Source: Haliotis rubra (Eukaryota). From it: DNA of 64,000 bases. Location: the NCBI RefSeq assembly GCF_003918875.1, contig NW_025766002.1, positions 4,216,001 through 4,280,000 on the forward strand. The letters are read 5' to 3'. A model generated the notes under the pieces. The model made no database searches and had not been told where the DNA came from. It saw only the letters and a list, made by a program, of their open reading frames with translations. A program made the translations under genes and the position numbers. Positions 1-47,187 of this stretch are shown piece by piece; position 1 is the first letter of the stretch; each line of letters opens with the position of its first letter.

Positions 1-153
1 ATGTTTGTTTTCAAAATGGATAACATTATATATTCAAATGTTCAATTGTTTGGAAAATATTGATAACGATCATATTTACCGATTTAAGTTATACCTCTGT
101 GGCATTACTCTTCTCAAACAAATCGATAATTTGTACATAATGTATTATTTCAG

Positions 154-687
154 AAACCAACAAAGTTTGTGACTCCTCTTTTGAGAAGAGAGGAAGTCTT
201 TGAGAACAACTTCAGCTTAAGAGACATGGACTGGTCAGCCTGGGTCAAGGTTATTTCCCCTGTCGTTCCTCTCAAACAGGATGCACAATGGGAAAAAAGA
301 CGGGGTGCCAACCCTGGATTCAGGAGAAGAACTATCTTCAAGTCCCAGAACAATAAGCCAGCTCTCTACGAGATCAGTGTTCAGACCACCAGGTTTGGAC
401 GTAGGTGTGTGGTATTCAGCAGGTTCTGCCACCACATTCTTGATAATGTTAACTGGGAAACACGACTCCTTGGAAACAAAATTGTCAGAGCTCAGGTGAA
501 CAATGTTGTGTCTCAGAACTGCAGTGTCTTTGTGCGGAGGGTGGTATATAGAAGAGCATCAGGTCACGTCAAAACAGCCGCAATGATGAAGTCCTATGAC
601 TACGCTTGGAGGCGTCTGAGGAGGTCGCGATCTACTGCTCGACATGTTTACAAACAAGGCAGCACAATTTCATCGGACAAAGTATAG
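154..687 (+). CDS. V1: last coding exon of a vWA + GIY-YIG-like gene; upstream exons lie before the window
   Basis: Acceptor ttatttcag|AAACCA at 153/154, open to TAG 687. Protein is nearly the same as the V7 last exon, and bases 1-153 align with V7 intron 4. AATAAA at 1059. Confidence 0.85.
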   Translation, partial: KPTKFVTPLLRREEVFENNFSLRDMDWSAWVKVISPVVPLKQDAQWEKRRGANPGFRRRTIFKSQNNKPALYEISVQTTRFGRRCVVFSRFCHHILDNVNWETRLLGNKIVRAQVNNVVSQNCSVFVRRVVYRRASGHVKTAAMMKSYDYAWRRLRRSRSTARHVYKQGSTISSDKV

Positions 688-3890: not shown

Positions 3891-4804
3891 ATTTGACCAC
3901 TTTCTAAATGGCATTGCGTATTCAAGTTGTACATTCTTGAAACTGCAAAACTGAGACCCGAAGCAATGATGTCATCTCCAATAATCTACCAACCAACATT
4001 GCGGCTGCACACCGTTTACGGCAAAGGCATCCCGGGACAGGCAGTGTAAGGAGCATGGATATCAACAATGTATTTTGGAGAGTATGTTTATAAGTTTCTA
4101 AAAGAATGTTTCCTGTGTCCATTCTGCAAATTACACTTTCAATGATAACACGTTCGCCACGTCAATGGGTGTGGATAACTTACCGATTAAATTTATCTTC
4201 AACATATTTTTCCGTTTATTTTCTATGTTTCCCTGCGGAAGAATTCGCTTAAACGCAGAGATATGAATATCGTCTACTCTTCAAAACACAACCAAAGTAC
4301 AGGCCTAAACATGACAGCTAACACAAGTCGCAACCAGCTGTCATTGATCGCCACTCAGTATCAAAGCTGGGCAACTCTCTGAGTAAGATCAGTCTACTCA
4401 CATACACTAGAGTTGAAAGATTAAACCATCTACGAGCTACACCTAATACCAGCGAAATAAAAGAACTCAATATCTACCGTCGCAATTCTAATACGGTATA
4501 CAGGGATAGAGTACATAATCAACTGGGTCTAATTACATTAGTACAGCTAATACAGAAATGTTACATATTTAACTATTAGATAAGGTCAGTTACTAGATAA
4601 AATCTACTAAACATAGATTTAAATCTACTCAATATAGGTCGGTTATGAAATCAAATCAACTTAACACATTTAATCAAAATAATTATGGTAAACGGATGTT
4701 CATTTGAAAATGAATTTGTTCATCATTTGAATGTATTCTTTTTACTCAACATATACACATTGAAATTGAAATCAGATGTTTGGACTTTTCCCAACAGATT
4801 CATC

Positions 4805-6200
4805 ATGGCTCTGCTTCCTCCTGGTGGACTTCCAGAGATTGTCTTCTCCTTCGACACAACCGGCTCTATGAGCAGTTGTCTGGCCGAAGTCCGAGGTCGA
4901 CTCCAGGACATGATACAGCGACTCCAGGCTGACATCCCCGCCATCAGAATGGCCGTCTTCGCCCACGGTGATTACAGTACAGCGTCCACATATGTCACGA
5001 AATGGATCGACTTCTCCACTGACATCAAAGAACTCTGCGACTTCGACCTGAACGTGGACGATGGGGGCGAGTGTTAAACTATTTCCGAAGGGAATGAGGT
5101 CGGCATCTAAAATTGGACAACTTTACAAACATATTTGACCTCCTCATGGCCATCTGCTACAGGGAGCATGGAGCAGACATCCTTCATGTAAGTTGAAATA
5201 ACCTCTTCTCCTGTCATAGAATTTTTCATATTTCCCCACATTTAACATTAAACAACATAAAGGAAACGAAACACGTTTATCGGGGAGGTTTGTTTTTCTC
5301 TTCACCAGTTATACGAGAAAGAGGTTCGAGCCCGTTGTAGGGATGGTACCCTCGGCTATGACATGGAAGGAATGTTTACATTCCTACGTGATAGAATAGC
5401 TTCCCCTGTTCAATCAACGACGACGACGACAACGATTACAAGCGGCGCCGCAGAGAAAACTGCGAAGGCTTCTCCCTTAAACAAAATAACATCCATGCAG
5501 AAAGTCAGGAAACCAAAACCCAGATGCATCAGGAGGACAAGGACAAAACCTTTAAAGGTAACATTTTCTCTCATTTCGTAAACGATGAGCGGTAACAATG
5601 AGATGGATAAATTTAGTTATTCTGTTATGACTTGTACAAGACGTATGATCTAACAATTTCTTAATTCCAGAAACCATCAAAGTTTGTGACACCTCTTCTG
5701 AGAAGAGAGGAGGTCTTTGAAAACAACTTCAGCTTAAGAGACATGGACTGGTCACACTGGGTTAAAGTTATCTCCCCTGATCTTCCTCTCAAACAGAATG
5801 CACAATGGGAGAAAAGACGGGGTGCCAACCCTGGATTCAAGAGAAGGACAGTGTTCAAGTTCAAGAACAATAAGCCAGCTTTCTACGAGATCAGTGTTCA
5901 GACGATCAAGTACGGGCGTAGGTGTGTGGTATTCAGCATGTTCGGTCACCATATTCCCAATAATGTTAACTGGGAAACACAACTCCTTGGAAACAAACTT
6001 GTCAGAGCTCAGGTGAACAATGTTGTGTCTCAGAACTGCAGTGTCTTCGTGCGGAGGGTGGTATATAGACGAGCATCAGCTCACGTCCAAGCAGCCGCAA
6101 TGATGAAGTCCTATACTACGCTTGGAGGCGCCTACCATCACGATCCACTGCTCGACATGTTTACAAACAAGGAAGCACAATTTCATCAGATAAAGTATAG
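4805..6200 (+). pseudogene. V2: vWA + GIY-YIG-like pseudogene
   Basis: ATG 4805. A deletion at ~5077 joins mid exon 2 (gagtgtta) to mid exon 3 and creates a TAA. Exon 4 is 5309-5557 and exon 5 starts at 5671, with a 1-nt deletion near 6114 (tcctatactac vs tcctatgactac). The TATA box is mutated to TATCAAAG (4359). Confidence 0.9.
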
Positions 6201-6674
6201 AATGTTTCTGAACATTGACTGATAATATCAGGTGTATGCTGAAAGAGACGGAGACATGGCTGTTTTCCTAAGACGGACTTTGTAAAATTAACTCTTATAG
6301 GAGAGTCCATATTCATATAAGTGACTGTGAAAGATCGAATCTCATATTATACAACTTCTCTCATGTTTTATAATTATATGAAGAAGTCATGGTATGCCAT
6401 ACCATTGTGTGACTGAGGTGAAGCGTGTTCTGCCGAATGACAGAGACTGAAGAAATGTTAATTGTTGTACATGTCATTGTTTATATTACAATGTAAATAG
6501 AACTCATTCATTAACCTACATTTATGTTTTTGTGTGATATGTGTAATGTAAGGAATGTACAAAGCAAACTACAAGCACTTGCATACATTATAGTTTCTGA
6601 TCCAATGTATTCTTGTATGAATCTGTACTCTTGCACATCAACATGATACATTTCTCCTTCAAGGAGTCTTCCTC

Positions 6675-10539: not shown

Positions 10540-12213
10540 ATGGCTTTGCTTCCTCCTGGTGGACTTCCAGAGATTGTCTTCTCCTTCGACACAACAGGCT
10601 CTATGAGCAGTTGTCTGGCCGAAGTCCGAAGTCGACTCCAGGACATGATACAGCGACTCCAGGCTGACATCCCCGCCATCAGAATGGCCGTCTTTGCACA
10701 TGGTGATTACTGTACCAAATCCACATATGTCACAAAATGGATCGACTTCTCCACTGACATCAAAGAACTCTGCGACTTCGTCATGAACGTGGAAACGACG
10801 GGAGGCAGGAACGATGGGGGCGAGTGTTACGAACTTGTTCTCAGACAAGTGGGGGAGAAGTTGTCATGGACACCAGGATCTAACCGTGTTCTCGTCGTTG
10901 TCGGGGATGACAACCCTCACGATCCAAACTTCAGTGACAATACACAAAGGATAGACTGGAGAGAGGAAATTCAAACACTCCAAAAAATGGTAAGCTCATT
11001 TCCTCTAAATATTCTTAGATGCTTATGTGTTCATTTCACTGTATTTGTAATCAAATTAAAAATACACGAAACTCGTGTGTACTTAATCCATTCACTGTAT
11101 ATCTCCATTAATTTCCAGGGAATACGGATCTACGGAGTTGAGTGCGACAGCCGAGCTGCAACATTCTTCCAAACCATTTCCAAAGAGACAGGAGGCCGGC
11201 ATCTTAAATTGGACAACTTTACGAACATATTTGACTTCCTCATGGCCATCTGCTACAGGGAGCATGGACCAGACATCCTTGATGTAAGTTGAAATACATG
11301 TACATGTAATATATATTTACACGCTTTCCCCACTTTACACAACTTAATCACCTTTAACAAAACACATTTTTACAAGGGATGTTTGTTTTTTCTCTTCACC
11401 AGTTATACGAGAAAGAGGTTCGAGCCCGTTGTGGGGATGGCACCCTCAGCAAAGACATGGAAGGAATGTTTACATCCCTACGTGATGGAATAGCTTCCCC
11501 TGTTCCATCAACGACAACGACGATTACTAGCGGTGCCGCAAAGAATGATGTGAAGACTTCCACATTAAAGAAGATAGCGTCCATGCAGAAAGTCAGGAAA
11601 CCTAAACCTAGATCCATCAAGAGGCCAAAATCTTTGGAGGCACAAACATCTCCCATTTCGTTAAAGATGCACGGCAACCAGAAAGCAGCGAAGTTTGTGA
11701 CACCTCTTTTTGAGAAGAGAGGAAGTCTTCGAGAATAATTTCAGCTTAAGAGACATGGACTGGTCACCCTGGGTCAAGGTTATCTCCCCTGACGCCCCCC
11801 TTAAACAGAATGCACAATGGGAGAAAAGACGGGGTGCCAACCCTGGATTCAGGAAAAGGACAGTATTCAAGTCCCAGAACAATAAGCCAGCTCTCTACGA
11901 GTTCAGTGTTCAGACGATCAAGTACGGACGTAGGTGTGTGGTATTCAGCAAGTTCTGCCACCATATTCCCGATAATGTGAACTGGGAAACACGACTCTTT
12001 GGAAACAAACTCGTGCGAGCTCAGGTGAACAATGTTGTGTCTCAGAAGTGCAGCATCTTTGTGCGGAGGGTGGTGTACAGAAGAGCATCGGGTCACGTCA
12101 AAACGGTCGCAATGATGAAGTCCTATGACTATGCTTGGAGGCGTCTAAGGTCACGATCCACTGCTCGACATGTTTACAAACAAGGCAGCACAATTTCATC
12201 AGACAAAGTATAG
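10540..12213 (+). pseudogene. V3: vWA + GIY-YIG-like gene with one +1 frameshift (pseudogene or homopolymer error)
   Basis: Coding segments 10540-10989, 11119-11283 and 11403-12213 with GT-AG introns. An extra T at ~11707-11711 (cctctttttgaga vs cctcttctgaga / cctcttttgaga) separates the ORFs 11379-11738 and 11710-12213. Confidence 0.8.
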
Positions 12214-17127: not shown

Positions 17128-18809
17128 ATGGCATTGCTTCCTCCTGGTGGACTTCCGGAAATAGTCTTCTCCTTCGACACAACAGGCTCAATGGAAGACT
17201 GTCTTGCCGAAGTGCGGGGTCGACTCCAGGACATGATACAGCGACTCCAGGCTGACATCCCCGCCATCAGAATTGCTGTCTTTGCACATGGTGATTACTG
17301 TACCAAATCCACATATGTCACAAAGTGGATCGACTTCTCCACTGACGTCAAGAAACTCTGCGACTTCGTCATGAACGTCAAAGGTACCGGGGGCACTAAT
17401 GATGGCGGCGAGTGTTACGAGCTTGTTCTCAGACAAGTGGGGGAGAAGTTGTCATGGACACCAGGATCTAACCGTGTTCTCGTCGTTGTCGGGGACGACG
17501 ACCCCCACGAACCGAACTTCAGAGGCAATACACAAAAGATAAACTGGAGAGAGGAAATTAAAACATTCCAAACAATGGTAAGTTCATTTCCACTGAATTC
17601 ATAGCTGTGTATCTGTTCATTTCACTGTATTTGTAATCAAATGAAAAGTATACGAAACTCATGAGTACTTAGTCCACTGACTGTATATCTCCATCACTTT
17701 CTAGGGAATAAGAATCTACGGAGTTGAGTGCGACAGTCGAGCTACGACATTCTTCCAAACCATTTCCAAAGAGACAGGAGGTCGGCATCTTAAGTTGGAC
17801 AACTTTACGAACATATTTGACTTCCTCATGGCCATCTGCTACAGGGAGCATGGAGCAGACATCCTTGATGTAAGTTGAAATACTTTCTCATCTTGACGTA
17901 TAGATATTTACCATATTTACTCACATTACACAACTTAATCTCCTTTACCAAAACACACATTTTTACAAGGGAGGTTTGTTTTTTCTTCACCAGTTATACG
18001 AGAAAGAGGTTCGAGCCCGCGGTGGGGATGGTACCCTCAGCAAAGACATGGAAGGAATGTTTACATCCCTTCGTGATGGAATAGTCCCCCCTGTTTCATC
18101 AACGACAACGACGATTACTAGCGGTGCCACGAAGAAAGGTGTCAAAGCTTCCACCTTAATGAAAACAATATCCATGCCAAGGGTCAGGAAACCCAAACCT
18201 AGATCCATCAAGAGGCCAACAACAACCTCTTTGAAGGTACAATCATCTCCCCTGTCGTTGAAGATGCACGGCAACCAGAAACCAACAAAGTTTGCGGCAC
18301 CTCTTCTGAGAAGGGAGGAAGTCTTTGAAAATAACTTTAGCTTAAGAGACATGGACTGGTCATCCTGGATCAAAGTCATCTCCCCTGACGTTCCTCTCAA
18401 ACAGGAAGCACAATGGGAGAAAAGACGGGGTGCCAACCCTGGATTCAGGAAAAGGACAGTGTTCAAGTCCAAGAACAATAAGCCAGCTGTCTATGAGTTC
18501 AGTGTTCAGACGATCAAGTACGGACGTAGGTGTGTGGTATTCAGCATGTTCTGCCACCACATTCCCGATAATGTGAACTGGGAAACACGACTCCTTGGAA
18601 ACAAAATTATCAGAGCTCAGGTGAACAATGTTGTGTCTCAGAACTGTAGTGTTTTTGTGCGGAGGGTGGTGTACAGAAGAGCATCGGGTCACGTCAAAAC
18701 AGCCGCAATGATGAAGTCCTATGACTACGCTTGGAGGCGTCTAAGATCACGATCCGCTGCTCGACATGTTTACAAACAAGGCAGCACAATATCATCAGAC
18801 AAAGTATAG
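17128..18809 (+). CDS. V4: vWA domain + basic linker + degenerate GIY-YIG-like domain protein, 476 aa (462 aa if the 42-nt remnant is spliced)
   Basis: join(17128-17577, 17705-17869, 17994-18809); phase-0 GT-AG introns and no stops. MIDAS-type FSFDTTGSM ... VVVGDD motifs. Confidence 0.9.
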
Positions 18810-23935: not shown

Positions 23936-25628
23936 ATGGCTTTAATTCCTCCTGGTGGACTTCCGGAGATTGTCTTCTCCTTCGACACAACAGGCTCAAT
24001 GGAAGCCTGTCTGGCCGAAGTCCGAGGTCGACTCCAGGACATGATACAGCGACTCCAAGCTGACATACCCGCAATCAGAATAGCCGTTTTCGCACACGGT
24101 GATTACTGTACCAAATCCAGGTATGTCACAAAGTGGATCGACTTCTCCACTAACGTCAAAGAACTCTGCGACTTCGTCATGAACGTCGAAAATACAGGAG
24201 GAAACGCAGACGATGGCGAGTGTTACGAGCTTGTTCTCAGACAAGTTCGGGAGGAGTTGTCATGGACACCAGGATCTAACCGTGTTCTCGTCGTTGTCGG
24301 GGATGACAACCCTCACGATCCGAACTTCAGAGGCAATACACAAAAGATAGACTGGAGAAAGGAAATTAAAACACTCCAAACAACGGTGAGCTCATTTCAT
24401 CTGCATTCCTATTTGTTTATCTGTTCATGTCACTGTATTTTAAATCAGATGAAAAGGATACGGAACTCATGCGTACTTAGTCCACTGACTGTATATCTCC
24501 ATCACTTTCTAGGGAATAAGAATCTACGGAGTTGAGTGCGACAGTCGAGCTAGGGACTTCTTTCAAACCATTTCCAACGATACAGGAGGTCGGCATCTTA
24601 AATTGGACAACTTTACGAACATCTTTGACTTCCTCATGGCCATCTGCTACAGGGAGCATGGAGCAGACATCCTTCATGTAAGTTGAAATGCCTTCTTATC
24701 TTGACGTATACATATTTACCATATTTACCCACATTACACAACTTAATCTCCTTCAACAAAACACATTTTTACAAGGGATGTTTGTTTTTCTCTTCACCAG
24801 TTATACGAGAAAGAGGTTCGAGCCCGCGGTGGGGATGGCACTCTCAGCAAAGACATGGAAGGAATGTTTACATCCCTTCGTGATGGAATAGTTCCCCCTG
24901 TTCCATCAACGACATCGACAACGACAACCACGAAGACAAGCGGTGCCGCAAAGAAAGGTGTCAAAGCTTCCACCTTGAAGAAAACAACATTCATGCAAAC
25001 GGTCAGGAAACCCAAACCTAGATCCATCAAGAGACCAAGAACAACATCTTTGAAGGTACAATCATCTCCCATTTCGTTAAAGATGCACGGCAACCAGAAA
25101 CCAACAAGGTTTGCGGCACCTCTTCTGAGAAGAGAGGAAGTCTTTGAAAATAACTTTAGCTTAAGAGACATGGACTGGTCACCCTGGGTCAAAGTCATCT
25201 CCCCTGACGTTCCTCTCAAACAGGAAGCACAATGGGAGAAAAGACGGGGTGCCAACCCTGGATTCAGGAAAAGGACAGTATTCAAGTCCCAGAACAATAA
25301 GCCAGCTCTCTACGAGTTCAGTGTTCAGACGATCAAGTACGGACGTAGGTGTGTGGTATTCAGCAAGTTCTGCCACCATATTCCCGATAATGTGAACTGG
25401 GAAACACGACTCTTTGGAAACAAACTCGTGCGAGCTCAGGTGAACAATGTTGTGTCTCAGAAGTGCAGCATCTTTGTGCGGAGGGTGGTGTACAGAAGAG
25501 CATCGGGTCACGTCAAAACGGTCGCAATGATGAAGTCCTATGACTATGCTTGGAGGCGTCTAAGGTCACGATCCACTGCTCGACATGTTTACAAACAAGG
25601 CAGCACAATTTCATCAGAGAAAGTATAG
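23936..25628 (+). CDS. V5: vWA + degenerate GIY-YIG-like protein, 480 aa
   Basis: join(23936-24385, 24513-24677, 24801-25628). Exon sizes 450 and 165 are conserved, splice sites are GT-AG, and the frame is open. Confidence 0.9.
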
Positions 25629-30893: not shown

Positions 30894-31114
30894 GACTCTT
30901 TGGAACCAAAATTGTCAGAGATCAGGTGAACAATATTGTGTCTCAGAACTGCAGTGTCTTTGTGCGGAGGGTGGTGTACAGAATGGTATCAGGTCACGTC
31001 AAATCAGTCGCATTGATGAAGTCCTATGACTATTCTTGGAGGCGTCTAAGATCACGATCCACTGCTCGACATGTTTACAAACAAGGCAGCACAATTTCAA
31101 CAGACAAAGTATAG
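30894..31114 (+). pseudogene. V6: 3' remnant of the last exon
   Basis: gactctttggaaccaaaattgtcaga...SYDYSWRRLRSRSTARHVYKQGSTISTDKV*. Everything upstream is replaced by the LINE; the downstream flank resembles that of V4. Confidence 0.9.
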
Positions 31115-35683: not shown

Positions 35684-37514
35684 ATGGCTTTGCTTCCTCC
35701 TGGTGGACTTCCAGAGATTGTCTTTTCCTTCGACACAACCGGCTCTATGAGCAGTTGTCTGGCCTCTGTCCGAGGTCGACTCCAGGACATGATACAGCGA
35801 CTCCAGGCTGACATCCCCGCCATCAGAATGGCCGTCTTCGCACACGGTGACTACTGTGACAAACACAACTATGTCACAAAGTGGATCGACTTCTCCACTA
35901 ATGTCAAGGAACTTTGTGACTTTGTCAATAACGTCAGTAGCACTGGAGGCGGAGACTCCGACGAATGTTACGAGCTCGTTCTCAGACAAGTGGGGGAGGA
36001 GTTGTCATGGACACCAGGATCAAATCGTGCCCTCGTCATGATTGGCGACGCCAACCCCCATGAGCCAGACTACTCCGACAACAAACTCAGGATAGATTGG
36101 AGGGAAGAGATTCAAACCCTCAATAAAATGGTGAGCCGAAGGTCTATGTAGACAAGTAAAAGTTTCAACAAAACGAAATACACGCATTCAAATGATCAAC
36201 CCAGTGCTGAAATGCATTTTGCGTCGTAATTACCACTTGTATATTATACGCCAAAAACTTCATCATGTCACTTATATCAAAATCCATCTTAATCATTTCC
36301 AGGGAGTGAAGATATATGGGGTAGAGCGTGGATCTGGCACCATGGAATTCTACAAGAGAATGTCACAGGAGACAGGAGGGCGCCATCTTCAACTTGACAG
36401 CTTCTCCAATGTCTTTGATTTCCTCATGGCCATCTGCTACAGGGAACATGGAGCAGACATGTTTGATGTAAGTTCGCCCTACGCTCAATTTGAAAACACA
36501 ACCTAAATATTTCTCATCATTAATTAAGTGTACTTTCCTTGACAAATATGTTTTCCTGTTTTAACATTTGTATATGTCATTTCAGGTCTACGAGAAAGAG
36601 GTCCGAGGTCGTTGTGCTGAAGGCGCCCTCAGCAAGGACATGGAAAAAATGTTTACATCGCTACGTGATGGAGTAGCCTCCCTTCCATCGTCAAAGAAGA
36701 CCACAACTGGTTGCAGTAAGAAAGATGTGACGGTCCCCACATTAAAGAAAACTACATCCTTCACAGGAATTAGAAAGGCCAAGCCTAAATCTATCAGGAG
36801 ACCAGGAACAAAATCACTGAAGGTATATTTTATCGATGTCTGTTTCAAATAATAATGACATTATATTATAATATTCATTTGCTTTGAAAAATATAACTGA
36901 TAACGATCGCTTTTACCACTACTGTGGTATTACCCGTTCTAAAAGAATCGATAATATATGTACATAATGTATTTTTTCAGAAACCAACAAAGTTCGTGAC
37001 ACCTCTTCTGAGAAGAGAGGAAGTCTTCGAGAATAACTTCAGCTTAAGAGACATGGACTGGTCGCCCTGGGTTAAAGTTATCTCCCCTAACGTTCCCCTC
37101 AAACAGGAAACACAATGGGCTAAGAGACGGGGTGCCAACCCTGGATTCAGGAAGAAGACCGTCTTCAAGTCCCAGAACAATAAGCCAGCTCTCTATGAGA
37201 TCAGTGTTCAGACCACCAGGTTTGGTCGTAGGTGTGTCGTTTTCAGCAAGTTCTGTCACCACATTCCTGATAATGTGAACTGGGAAACAAGACTCCTTGG
37301 AAATAAAATTGTCAGAGCTCAGGTGAACAATGTTGTGTCTCAGAACTGCAGTGTCTTTGTGCGGAGGTTGGTGTACAGAAGAGCATCAGGTCAAGTCAAA
37401 ACAGCCGCAATGATGAAGTCCTATGACTATGCTTGGAGGCGTTTGAGGAGGGCACGATCTACTGCTCGACATGTTTACAAACAAGGCAGCACAATTTCAT
37501 CAGACAAAATATAG
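35684..37514 (+). CDS. V7: vWA + degenerate GIY-YIG-like protein, 460 aa
   Basis: join(35684-36130, 36303-36467, 36586-36822, 36981-37514). All introns are phase 0 and GT-AG, and the frame is open. AATAAA at 37864. Confidence 0.92.
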
Positions 37515-44830: not shown

Positions 44831-47187
44831 ATGGTTTTGCTTCCTCCTGGTGGACTTCCGGAGATTGTCTTCTCCTTTGACACAACCGGCTCTATGTCTG
44901 GCTGTTTAGCTGAAGTCCGAGGTCGCCTCCAGGACATGATACAGCGACTCCAGGCTGACATCCCCGCCATCAGAATTGCCGTCTTCGCCCACGGTGACTA
45001 CTGTGATAGTTATCGTGCGACTCAATATGTCGACTTTTCCACTGACGTCGCCGAACTCTGCAAATTCGTTAAAAGCGTTGGCAGCACTGGGGGTGGAGGA
45101 GACGGAGGCGAATGTTACGAACTCGTTCTTCGAGAAGTAGGCGAGAAACTGTCGTGGACGCCGGGCTCAAATCGGGCTTTGGTCCTCATCGGGGATGAAC
45201 CACCACACACACCAAGTTTCAGGGAAAATAAACAGAAGATAGACTGGAGGAAAGAGCTGAAAAAGTTGACAACCATGGTGAGTTGACTTTTTCGACAGAT
45301 TTTAATTATCAAACTACAACAACCATTCTCTCAAACATAGCATCATGCGTTCTTGTGTTCTCAGCAATGTTGTATCTTACTTTCTATCCGCAGGGAGTGA
45401 AGATTTACGGTGTTGAGTGTGGAGGTGGTGGTATAGAATTCTACACTACTATTTCTGAGCAGTCGGGAGGTCGTTATCTTCAACTCAAAGATTTCTCCAA
45501 CGTGTTTGACCTCCTAATGGCCATCTGTTACCGGGAACAGGGAGCAGATATGTTGGAGGTAGGCTCGCAGCTCTCCATCAGTTATGCCTGATGCAACCTA
45601 AAAATTCATCCCTTCATCTTTAGGGAATAACCTTTATGGATTCCTTTCTTCCATTATTGCTGTTATCTGTTAGAATGTTGTGGATCAGCTATTTCGTAAT
45701 TCAGTTACGAGTAGTGTATTCTACCTAATACACATTGCTATGAAGCAAAACTGGCCACTCAGGAAAAAATTACATTTACATTGGGTAAAATTTACATATC
45801 ACAGAGGTGTTACGCTTGATCTTTTAACCGTTAATGGGTAAAGTGTGTTAGATATATATTTAATAATATGCTTACCATAATGGTCAATTTCCATGAGCCT
45901 GTAAGAAAATCTGAACATATCTGTCGACTACTTTAGGCCTACGAGAAGGAGGTCCGAAGTCGCAGAGGTGACGGTTCTCTGAGCAAAGATGTGGAAGGAA
46001 TGTTTACTGCCCTGCGTGATGGAGCAGCTGCCGTTCCTGTGTCGACGAAGGTGACAAACACACGCGGCAAGAAAGCAGAAGCTGATCCAGTGTTGCCAAA
46101 ACCTGCATCAAAAATCAAAACTGGAAAATCAAAACCGACATCTAACAGAAAACCAAAGCCCAAAAGTATTAAGGTAATTAGATACCACAGTCAGCATGTA
46201 TATGAATATTCTTTGTCAATAAGCTACACAGAAAACCCTTTTTGTTTATGTAATAATCACCAGTACGAACATGGGCCCCGGTTCACATAGCTATCGTAGC
46301 GCTACGACTGTCGTAAGTCTATGTTACAGTATAGGAGGTACGATAGTCGTAGCGCTACGATAGCTTTGTGAAACGGGGCCATGGTTATTTATTAATAAAT
46401 TTACAACAGGGGTATGTGGGGTTTGGATAGCCTTATTGACACATTACGTTAAGTCCAGGGTTTCATTCATAAGTTTGGTAAAACTTTAAATTAGTTGAAA
46501 TTGCGGTTGAACATTTGTAAAAGGTATAAATCTCTACTCGCTCACTCACTCTCTCAGTTAATGTTTTACCATATTGGACAATGGGCATATGAGTCAATGC
46601 TGTGGGCATGTCAGTCAATACAAGAATCTGTCCATCCTTTTTTCAAACAGAAACCAAGCAAGAAACCGTTACTGATGAGAGAGGAGATCCCCGAGGACAA
46701 TTTTGCCCTGAAGGACATGGACTGGTCGCCCTGGGTCAAAGGTATCTCCCCTAGGCGCCCACAGCCTCAAGACGCAGACAGGTGGGAGAAACGGTGGGGT
46801 GATATGAAAACTGGATTCAGAACCAAGAAAATCTTCAGCTCCAAGAATAACAAACCAGCACTCTATGAGATCGGTGTTCAGGTCAACCGCAATGGGCGGA
46901 GGTTCGTGGTCTTGAACACACTCTGCCGCCATATTCCGGACGGTGTCCACTGGGAAACTCGTCTCTTTGGAAACAAGATTGTCAAAGCCCAAGTAAACAA
47001 AGTTGTGTCTCAAGGTTGTAGTGTCTTCGTGCGGAGGGCAACATTCAAAACAGTCAAGAGTCACGACAAAACTGTTCAGTCAGCTCTCCTTACTTACGAT
47101 TATGCCTGGAGGAGGCTTAGGAACATACGCACACGTGCTCGATATGTTGTGAAACAAGGCTGTACCATTTCCTCCAACAAATGGTGA
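44831..47187 (+). CDS. V8: most divergent vWA + degenerate GIY-YIG-like paralogue, 461 aa
   Basis: join(44831-45277, 45394-45558, 45937-46173, 46651-47187). Same exon phases and the same 447/165/237 sizes as V7. Confidence 0.9.
46274..46380. mobile_element. Palindromic MITE in V8 intron 4
   Basis: ggccccggttcaca...tgtgaaacggggcc, 3-bp ATG flanks. Same family as 19868-19974. Confidence 0.8.

Follow-up and report, generated by a model that had tools for sequence, protein, structure and literature searches.

What becomes of a nuclease fold when the residues that would cut nucleic acid can no longer be found in it? The question is raised by a window of 64,000 nucleotides from the abalone Haliotis rubra (RefSeq assembly GCF_003918875.1, contig NW_025766002.1, positions 4,216,001 to 4,280,000), the whole stretch of DNA analysed here, which carries a head-to-tail array of related genes on the + strand. 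We concentrated on one of these genes, V6, whose product joins an N-terminal vWA domain through a basic linker to a C-terminal domain of 167 residues, numbered 1-167 below. An initial annotation had read this C-terminal domain as a catalytically dead GIY-YIG nuclease of the kind found in plant ET proteins. The domain is truly homologous to the ET-type (Pfam PF19239) branch of the GIY-YIG fold and belongs to a mollusc-wide family. We consider it probable that it is a conserved pseudo-nuclease, that is, an ET-type scaffold without one-metal catalysis that has been retained as a basic module which binds or recognises nucleic acid, next to a vWA docking domain.

The motifs on which the initial annotation was built are all present in the V6 translation and in the order given there: WSPWVKVISP, KPALYEISV, VVF(SKF), WETRL, VVSQNCSVFVRR and SYDYAWR. 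The start proposed for the domain, 37044, corresponds to its residue 12, and the proposed end, 37514, is the last letter of the stop codon. The motifs also recur, as had been claimed, in the seven other copies of the array, including the divergent copy V8 (KPALYEIGV, VVLN, TYDYAWR). Conservation among paralogues would by itself be trivial; the domain is conserved in gastropods, bivalves and an annelid.

Relationship to the ET-type GIY-YIG family

Recognition by a curated family model came through V8, which scores 29.9 bits against the Pfam family PF19239 'GIY_YIG_domain' (curated cut-off 21.4, E 5.5e-7). The same family is matched weakly, at E<=1, by 14 of 19 aligned relatives. When a profile built from 19 domains was searched against 1.84 billion cluster representatives, 248 of these matched at E<=1e-3 and 169 at E<=1e-10. 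All named matches come from Littorina, Batillaria, Babylonia, Patella, Gigantopelta, Haliotis, Mercenaria, Mya, Pecten, Mizuhopecten or the annelid Owenia. The vWA domain of V6 recurs in 58 of the retrieved proteins, which contain 55 of the 162 complete domains, others being stand-alone or fragments; vWA and PF19239 are the only Pfam families found on the relatives, and the precomputed Pfam annotation already tags a few of the family proteins with PF19239. Database labels such as 'YR811-like' or 'R811' on some relatives recall the Mimivirus R811-like vWA proteins and reflect the N-terminal vWA domain only. One vWA-fused member, P0164, belongs to the annelid Owenia fusiformis, which indicates that the fusion predates Mollusca or has spread beyond them.

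The best bridge between the abalone family and PF19239 is a protein of the clam Mercenaria mercenaria (LOC123525290, here P0053), in which five to seven domains of this type stand in tandem. Its PF19239 match has E 1.3e-45 and covers positions 2-158 of the 163 in the model. Comparison by hhalign of the abalone-type family profile (alignment A2) with that of the clam repeats (A4) gave a probability of 99.1% (E 9.5e-19) over 127 columns, and the W-S-x-W extension, the Tyr-Glu of strand beta1, the Arg of strand beta3 and the Y-x-Y-A-W sequence are found both in V6 and in these PF19239-positive repeats. In contrast to the abalone protein, the clam protein begins with a transposase/CENP-B-like helix-turn-helix (residues 80-128) and not with a vWA domain; its repeats span residues 120-983. 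The plant ET motifs quoted in the initial annotation are very like the sequences of these clam repeats. The clam protein may be an active nuclease, or a mobile-element protein that has been domesticated.

Through the V8 match and the link to the clam protein, the abalone domain shares its Pfam family with the GIY-YIG domain of plant ET1/ET2/HRT. The 'ET-type' label is justified at this level because TAPscan v4 lists PF19239, in supplementary file 3 of PMC11712027, as its detector of the plant ET family, and it is likewise at the Pfam-family level that the likeness in the four shared features is established. A passage of PMC6585611 that cites Ivanov 2008 states that the plant ET2 domain functionally replaces the nicking domain of UvrC, and ET genes are described there as found only in plants. 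The V6 protein is not an ET protein; only the domain type is held in common. Whereas plant ET proteins carry C-terminal Cys-rich repeats that bind zinc and DNA (ET or HRT repeats), the V6 protein has none and ends 24 residues past the GIY-YIG core; it also differs in its N-terminal vWA partner, in its mollusc host and in missing the YIG Gly, the Glu and the Asn of the catalytic site.

We then have the evidence of the predicted fold. An AlphaFold model computed from a 76-sequence alignment reached a predicted local distance difference test score (pLDDT) of 95.7 and a predicted template modelling score (pTM) of 0.90, and replaced an earlier model from 19 sequences (pLDDT 69) that had given weak GIY-YIG enrichment. 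In order along the chain it contains three short N-terminal strands, strands 60-67 and 74-82, two helices (91-96 and 99-110), strand 114-121, a further helix (125-135), the YDYAW loop and, at the C-terminus, two more short strands, and the small alpha/beta fold of GIY-YIG proteins, a three-stranded sheet with a closing helix, is present in it. In an all-against-all structural search of 48,161 PDB representative chains, the six best matches were all GIY-YIG nucleases, and eight of the ten best were GIY-YIG domains. Among them were the GIY-YIG domain of UvrC (1ycz; rank 2, score 4.7, 82 of 89 residues aligned), PD-T4-3 (9u75; rank 3, 4.5), Hpy188I (3oqg; rank 4, 4.4), I-TevI (1ln0; rank 5, 4.3, 79 of 92 residues aligned), the N-domain of AtGRXS16 (2lwf; rank 6, 4.0), Eco29kI (3mx4; rank 8, 3.5) and EF2693 (1ywl; rank 10, 2.9), the last of which is listed under Slx-1 in PMC1564403. 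The top five Foldseek matches were chains of Hpy188I and of T4 endonuclease II (EndoII), at E 0.17-0.4; the sequence identity of EndoII (PDB 2wsh) to the abalone domain is 10%. Searched against PDB sequences, the family profiles A2 and A3 returned no match. For the modelled fold no single score is decisive; the ranking is, when taken together with the sequence evidence. The family assignment made in the initial annotation is thus borne out by the V8 score, the weakly matching relatives, the hhalign comparison and the six best structural matches.

Two observations stand beside these results. The last exon of V6 weakly matched caspase-1 p10 at E ~0.1, which we attribute to chance, since the stretch is short, has no fold support and is absent in the relatives. 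The best viral structural matches, found in BFVD, were M1I060 (E 8.4e-4, probability 1.00, 168 columns), M1HHK8 and M1HWP8, which may come from chlorovirus proteomes, to judge by the style of their accessions. If the ET-type domain does occur in giant algal viruses, this would bear on how plants and lophotrochozoans come to share it.

Residues at the canonical catalytic site

The catalytic site of GIY-YIG enzymes such as I-TevI and UvrC comprises the Tyr of the GIY element, the Tyr of the YIG element, an Arg about 10 residues later and a metal-binding Glu, to which the UvrC lineage adds an Asn that follows the Glu by 12 residues. PMC1564403 gives the general pattern. The best repeats of the clam protein are canonical in this respect, with G-V-Y-E, V-V-Y-T-G, an Arg at +10, a Glu at -12 and Y-A-W-N, and the last repeat has them all. 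By phmmer these repeats line up with the UvrC motifs at E 0.54, which is not significant and serves as a residue guide only. The residue mapping was carried over to V6 through alignments A3 and A2/A4.

By this mapping the GIY Tyr of V6 is kept as Y62. F78 takes the place of the YIG Tyr, and S79/K80 stand where the YIG Gly has been lost, the sequence at this place being V-V-F78-S-K in V6 and V-V-L-N-T in V8. R94, 16 residues after F78, is a possible counterpart of the catalytic Arg, in a part where the alignment is gapped. The metal-binding Glu is lost, with T131/A132 in its position, and the closing Asn is replaced by R143. The abalone domain would therefore retain only the first Tyr, and possibly the Arg, of the Tyr, Tyr, Arg, Glu and Asn set seen in the UvrC N-terminal domain (1ycz, 1yd6) and I-TevI (1ln0). 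The matched ranges from the structure search (I-TevI 2-93 on model residues 58-146, UvrC 1-89 on 45-144, EndoII to 132 on 145) fit the mapping: if the ends are ungapped, they would put Tyr6 on Y62, Asn88/Asn90 on R143 and EndoII Glu118 near T131. EndoII is an active nuclease, of which Glu118 had to be mutated for crystallisation; at about that position the abalone domain has Thr/Ala, and it ends in an additional C-terminal tail. As PDB titles show, the usual means of inactivating these enzymes is to exchange the Glu (EndoII E118A; Eco29kI 'inactive variant E142Q').

The same picture emerges from the family alignment of 162 complete domains, in which each column holds 164-171 residues. The column of the first Tyr is Tyr in 153 of 171 sequences and lies at the 12th entropy percentile. 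The second Tyr column is mixed (Y 91, F 41, L 16, W 10), Arg occupies its column in 48 of 169 sequences, the Glu column contains Thr, Val or Ala, and the Asn column contains R (49), N (26) and K (21). A Gly near the YIG place is found in 10 of the 162 complete domains and the full canonical set in only one, from Ruditapes (P0028). Among 46 non-redundant members fused to vWA, the columns for Arg, Glu and Asn lie at the 52nd-64th entropy percentile of the domain, while E63, R118, Y140 and S163 never vary and W91, D139, W142 and R153 hardly do. These column entropies lead us to conclude that the canonical site is free of constraint and that a different set of residues is constrained. Since E63 and R118 are also present in the canonical clam repeats, they are more likely part of the scaffold of the ET branch than of a replacement active site. 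The C-terminal tail, a family-specific addition, is among the most conserved parts of the family, with R153, K157 and I162 nearly invariant and S163 invariant (106 of 106).

The initial annotation had named FS or LN at the YIG place, a metal-site helix without its Glu, and an Arg in place of the terminal Asn; each of these proved accurate, V6 having FS and V8 LN, no Glu in the helix before YDYAW (ASGQVKTAAMM), and Arg after YDYAW. Its further claim, that the domain is catalytically dead, agrees with the residue mapping and with how freely the Arg, Glu and Asn columns vary, and nuclease activity would, on sequence grounds, have been lost. The loss of the canonical site is, as far as the family alignment tells, old and family-wide (molluscs and one annelid) and not particular to the abalone array.

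Possible functions of the domain

Between the window copies, the ratio of nonsynonymous to synonymous substitution rates (dN/dS) of the domain is 0.12-0.25, with dS up to ~1.5 against V8. The domain is under purifying selection and is not decaying. It is also strongly basic: the window copies contain 34 Lys+Arg against 11-15 Asp+Glu, the isoelectric point (pI) is 10.5-11.3 and the net charge is ~+22 on 167 residues. The initial annotation had proposed that the domain was retained to bind DNA/RNA or to act as a decoy; purifying selection and a pI near 11 fit binding, which we favour. In the vWA half, the metal-site residues D17, T19, S21, T87 and D123 are invariant in the family (alignment A1); no PDB sequence match was found for this half at E<=1. 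By inspection the protein has no signal peptide, its N-terminus leading directly into the first vWA strand, and an intracellular location is the best explanation.

In the pseudo-nuclease explanation, the vWA-fused family would have given up the canonical one-metal active site and kept the scaffold under purifying selection since before the gastropod/bivalve split. This scaffold bears new invariant residues, namely E63, R118, D139-Y140-x-W142 and, in the tail, R153...I162-S163. The domain would then act as a non-cutting module that binds DNA or RNA, or recognises it, and that carries the vWA domain, which docks proteins in a metal-dependent way, to nucleic acid, or nucleic acid to the vWA domain. 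We infer such a division of labour between the two domains; the vWA metal site of V6 appears intact, and the basic linker lies between the vWA and C-terminal domains.

Several points weigh against this explanation. The case for nucleic-acid binding is made from charge and ancestry. The last exon of V6 gave no Pfam match at a threshold as loose as E<=10, and no meaningful match to a PDB sequence. The equivalences of the second Tyr and of the Arg come from gapped, uncertain sequence alignments between beta2 and the first helix. Real enzymes also stray from the consensus: Slx1 is without the Asn motif and COG1833 has an Asp there (PMC1564403), and Hpy188I is described in the title of PMC2630997 as having an unusual active site. 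Finally, E63, E92, D139 and R118/R119, all polar and invariant, could together serve as an alternative active site.

This last point leads to the possibility of a domain that still acts as a nuclease, or as some other enzyme of phosphoryl transfer, with Y62 together with E63, E92, D139 and R118/R119 as a rearranged site. We think it unlikely. Y62 is indeed constrained, several polar residues are invariant in more than 160 sequences, as is usual in active sites, the domain is under purifying selection, and known GIY-YIG enzymes do tolerate changes of the Asn and Arg (PMC1564403; Hpy188I, title of PMC2630997). However, E63 and R118 occur in the canonical-looking clam repeats and are hence scaffold-like, the metal-ligand helix has no conserved acidic residue at all, and replacing the Glu is how enzymes of the family are made inactive. 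Another reading is that the domain is a module that binds protein or a small ligand, for example as an oligomerisation or decoy surface unrelated to nucleic acid, its basic charge being meant for a different partner. In its favour, the new invariant surface (the N-terminal WSxW strand, the YDYAW loop and the C-terminal tail with S163) is unrelated to the canonical cleft. vWA proteins work in protein assemblies, and tandem expansion with divergence of copies (V8 is ~60% identical to V6 by tblastn) resembles fast-evolving recognition families. Against this, the high net charge and the basic linker indicate a polyanion as partner, the ancestral fold cuts DNA, and the low dN/dS leaves no sign of diversifying selection over the whole domain, so that we regard this reading, too, as doubtful. 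That the GIY-YIG likeness is a matter of chance or topology in an unrelated fold is largely refuted and in our view highly improbable, given that the paralogue V8 lies above the curated cut-off, that the profile-profile probability is so high, that GIY-YIG domains dominate the best structural matches and that the small UvrC and I-TevI domains are covered almost completely.

The pseudo-nuclease explanation places a domain type of PF19239 in a large, unstudied mollusc and annelid family, with vWA as a different partner and with its catalytic residues stripped, and the vWA-fused domain would have been under purifying selection for hundreds of millions of years. To our knowledge, conserved pseudo-enzymes of the GIY-YIG fold have hardly been described, so the family offers a clean case for asking what purpose a non-cutting nuclease scaffold serves. 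Literature searches on GIY-YIG and vWA in molluscs found nothing on the abalone-type family, nor did a full-text search for the domain motif strings bring up anything of relevance. Its amplification in tandem in abalone could point to defence or to surveillance of the genome as a role. More speculatively, and with a low probability in our estimate, the genes may represent an old lophotrochozoan family in which the fold now serves as a nucleic-acid sensor that does not cut, or as an enzyme whose site is new (E63, R118, D139, S163), and has been wired to vWA and amplified in tandem for an innate immune or genome-defence role; if so, the ET nuclease domain, though called 'plant-specific', would have a wide history in animals. 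The PADLOC defence models gave no match for the database proteins P0007, P0014 and P0053. The practical weight of the family is modest at present, its function being a prediction.

Gene model, transcripts and the tandem array

The coordinates of V6, of the parts of its C-terminal domain and of the other domain copies are collected in Table 1. V6 has four exons of 149, 55, 79 and 177 codons (460 in all), and all its introns have GT..AG borders. Contigs from four public runs skip exactly the three V6 introns and show no depth inside them; the RNA status of these runs was only guessed by the tool, and the contigs differ by 1-3% from the window and may represent alleles, paralogues or close species. 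Intron-free contigs with GT..AG borders are nonetheless the product expected of spliced transcripts, and we take the domain to be transcribed with splicing. In each of the four runs one contig connects 35817 with 36420 at non-canonical CG..AT borders, with only 26 letters on one side; the joint is most likely a paralogue chimera of the assembly and not a real splice.

Table 1. Positions in the window of the V6 exons, of the parts of the V6 C-terminal domain and of further copies of the domain.
Feature	Positions	Strand	Basis
V6 exon 1: start codon and most of the vWA domain, metal site D-x-T-x-S (FDTTGS)	35684..36130	+	Pfam PF25106 E 5.4e-7, PF00092; splice joint in contigs
V6 exon 2: end of the vWA domain	36303..36467	+	contigs, protein matches
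V6 exon 3: basic linker rich in Lys/Arg/Pro/Thr	36586..36822	+	contigs, translation
V6 exon 4, including stop codon TAG (37512-37514); whole C-terminal domain inside	36981..37514	+	AG acceptor 36979-36980; contigs join 36820/22 to 36979/81
ET-type GIY-YIG-like domain of V6, residues 1-167	37011..37511	+	translation, AlphaFold, PDB matches, hhalign
N-terminal extension RREEVFENNFSLRDMDWSPWVKVISP; R2, E3, W17, W20 invariant or nearly so; common to the clam P0053 repeats	37011..37088	+	alignments
Strand beta1 ALYEISVQ, 'GIY' equivalent; Y62 kept, E63 invariant (171/171)	37188..37211	+	family columns, model
Strand beta2 RRCVVFSKF, 'YIG' equivalent; F78 for Tyr, S79/K80 for Gly	37227..37253	+	alignments, model
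Helix WETRLL; R94 possible counterpart of the catalytic Arg, alignment uncertain	37281..37298	+	family columns, model
Strand beta3 SVFVRRLV; R118 invariant (171/171), with R119	37350..37373	+	family columns, model
Helix ASGQVKTAAMM, then YDYAWR; T131/A132 at the Glu place, 12 before the Asn place; R143 for Asn	37383..37439	+	alignments, model
C-terminal tail, residues 144-167; two short strands predicted with high confidence	37440..37511	+	family columns, model
V1 domain copy; remainder of the V1 gene precedes the window	130..687	+	tblastn, translation
V2 domain copy, broken	5665..6222	+	tblastn, translation
V3 domain copy	11701..12213	+	tblastn, translation
V4 domain copy, H. rubra LOC124275375	18276..18809	+	tblastn, translation
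V5 domain copy, H. rubra LOC124275374	25095..25628	+	tblastn, translation
Isolated domain fragment	30896..31114	+	tblastn, translation
V8 domain copy (divergent), H. rubra LOC124275380; only window copy above the PF19239 cut-off	46630..47187	+	translation, Pfam

When the V6 exon translations were searched against the window by tblastn, the C-terminal exon was matched at eight further places and the vWA exons at five, in addition to a truncated match in the broken V2 gene. The window contains no runs of N. Among database proteins, V5, V4, V8 and V2 are 96-100% identical to the H. rubra products of LOC124275374, LOC124275375, LOC124275380 and LOC124275271, respectively. The protein nearest to V6 is a 460-residue protein of H. 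cracherodii (P0007), with ~96% identity over exons 1 and 2, among the pieces listed at 88% identity or more.

Some members of the array are damaged. In V2 (4784-6222) the vWA part is truncated, and a frame change near 6114-6117 removes the YDYAW end; the tail runs on in another frame (5970-6200). Despite these breaks, V2 is annotated in H. rubra as a 300-residue protein (LOC124275271, P0013). The fragment at 30896-31114 comprises no more than the final 73 codons of the domain, has neither vWA nor linker exons upstream of it, and is probably a truncated pseudogene copy. In V4 (17904-18809) and V5 (24747-25628) no stop interrupts the frame between exons 3 and 4, which are linked by a short in-frame insert, SLKVQSSP.SLKMHGNQKP; this insert is treated as coding in the H. 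rubra protein models and matches the position of the 158-nucleotide intron of V6.

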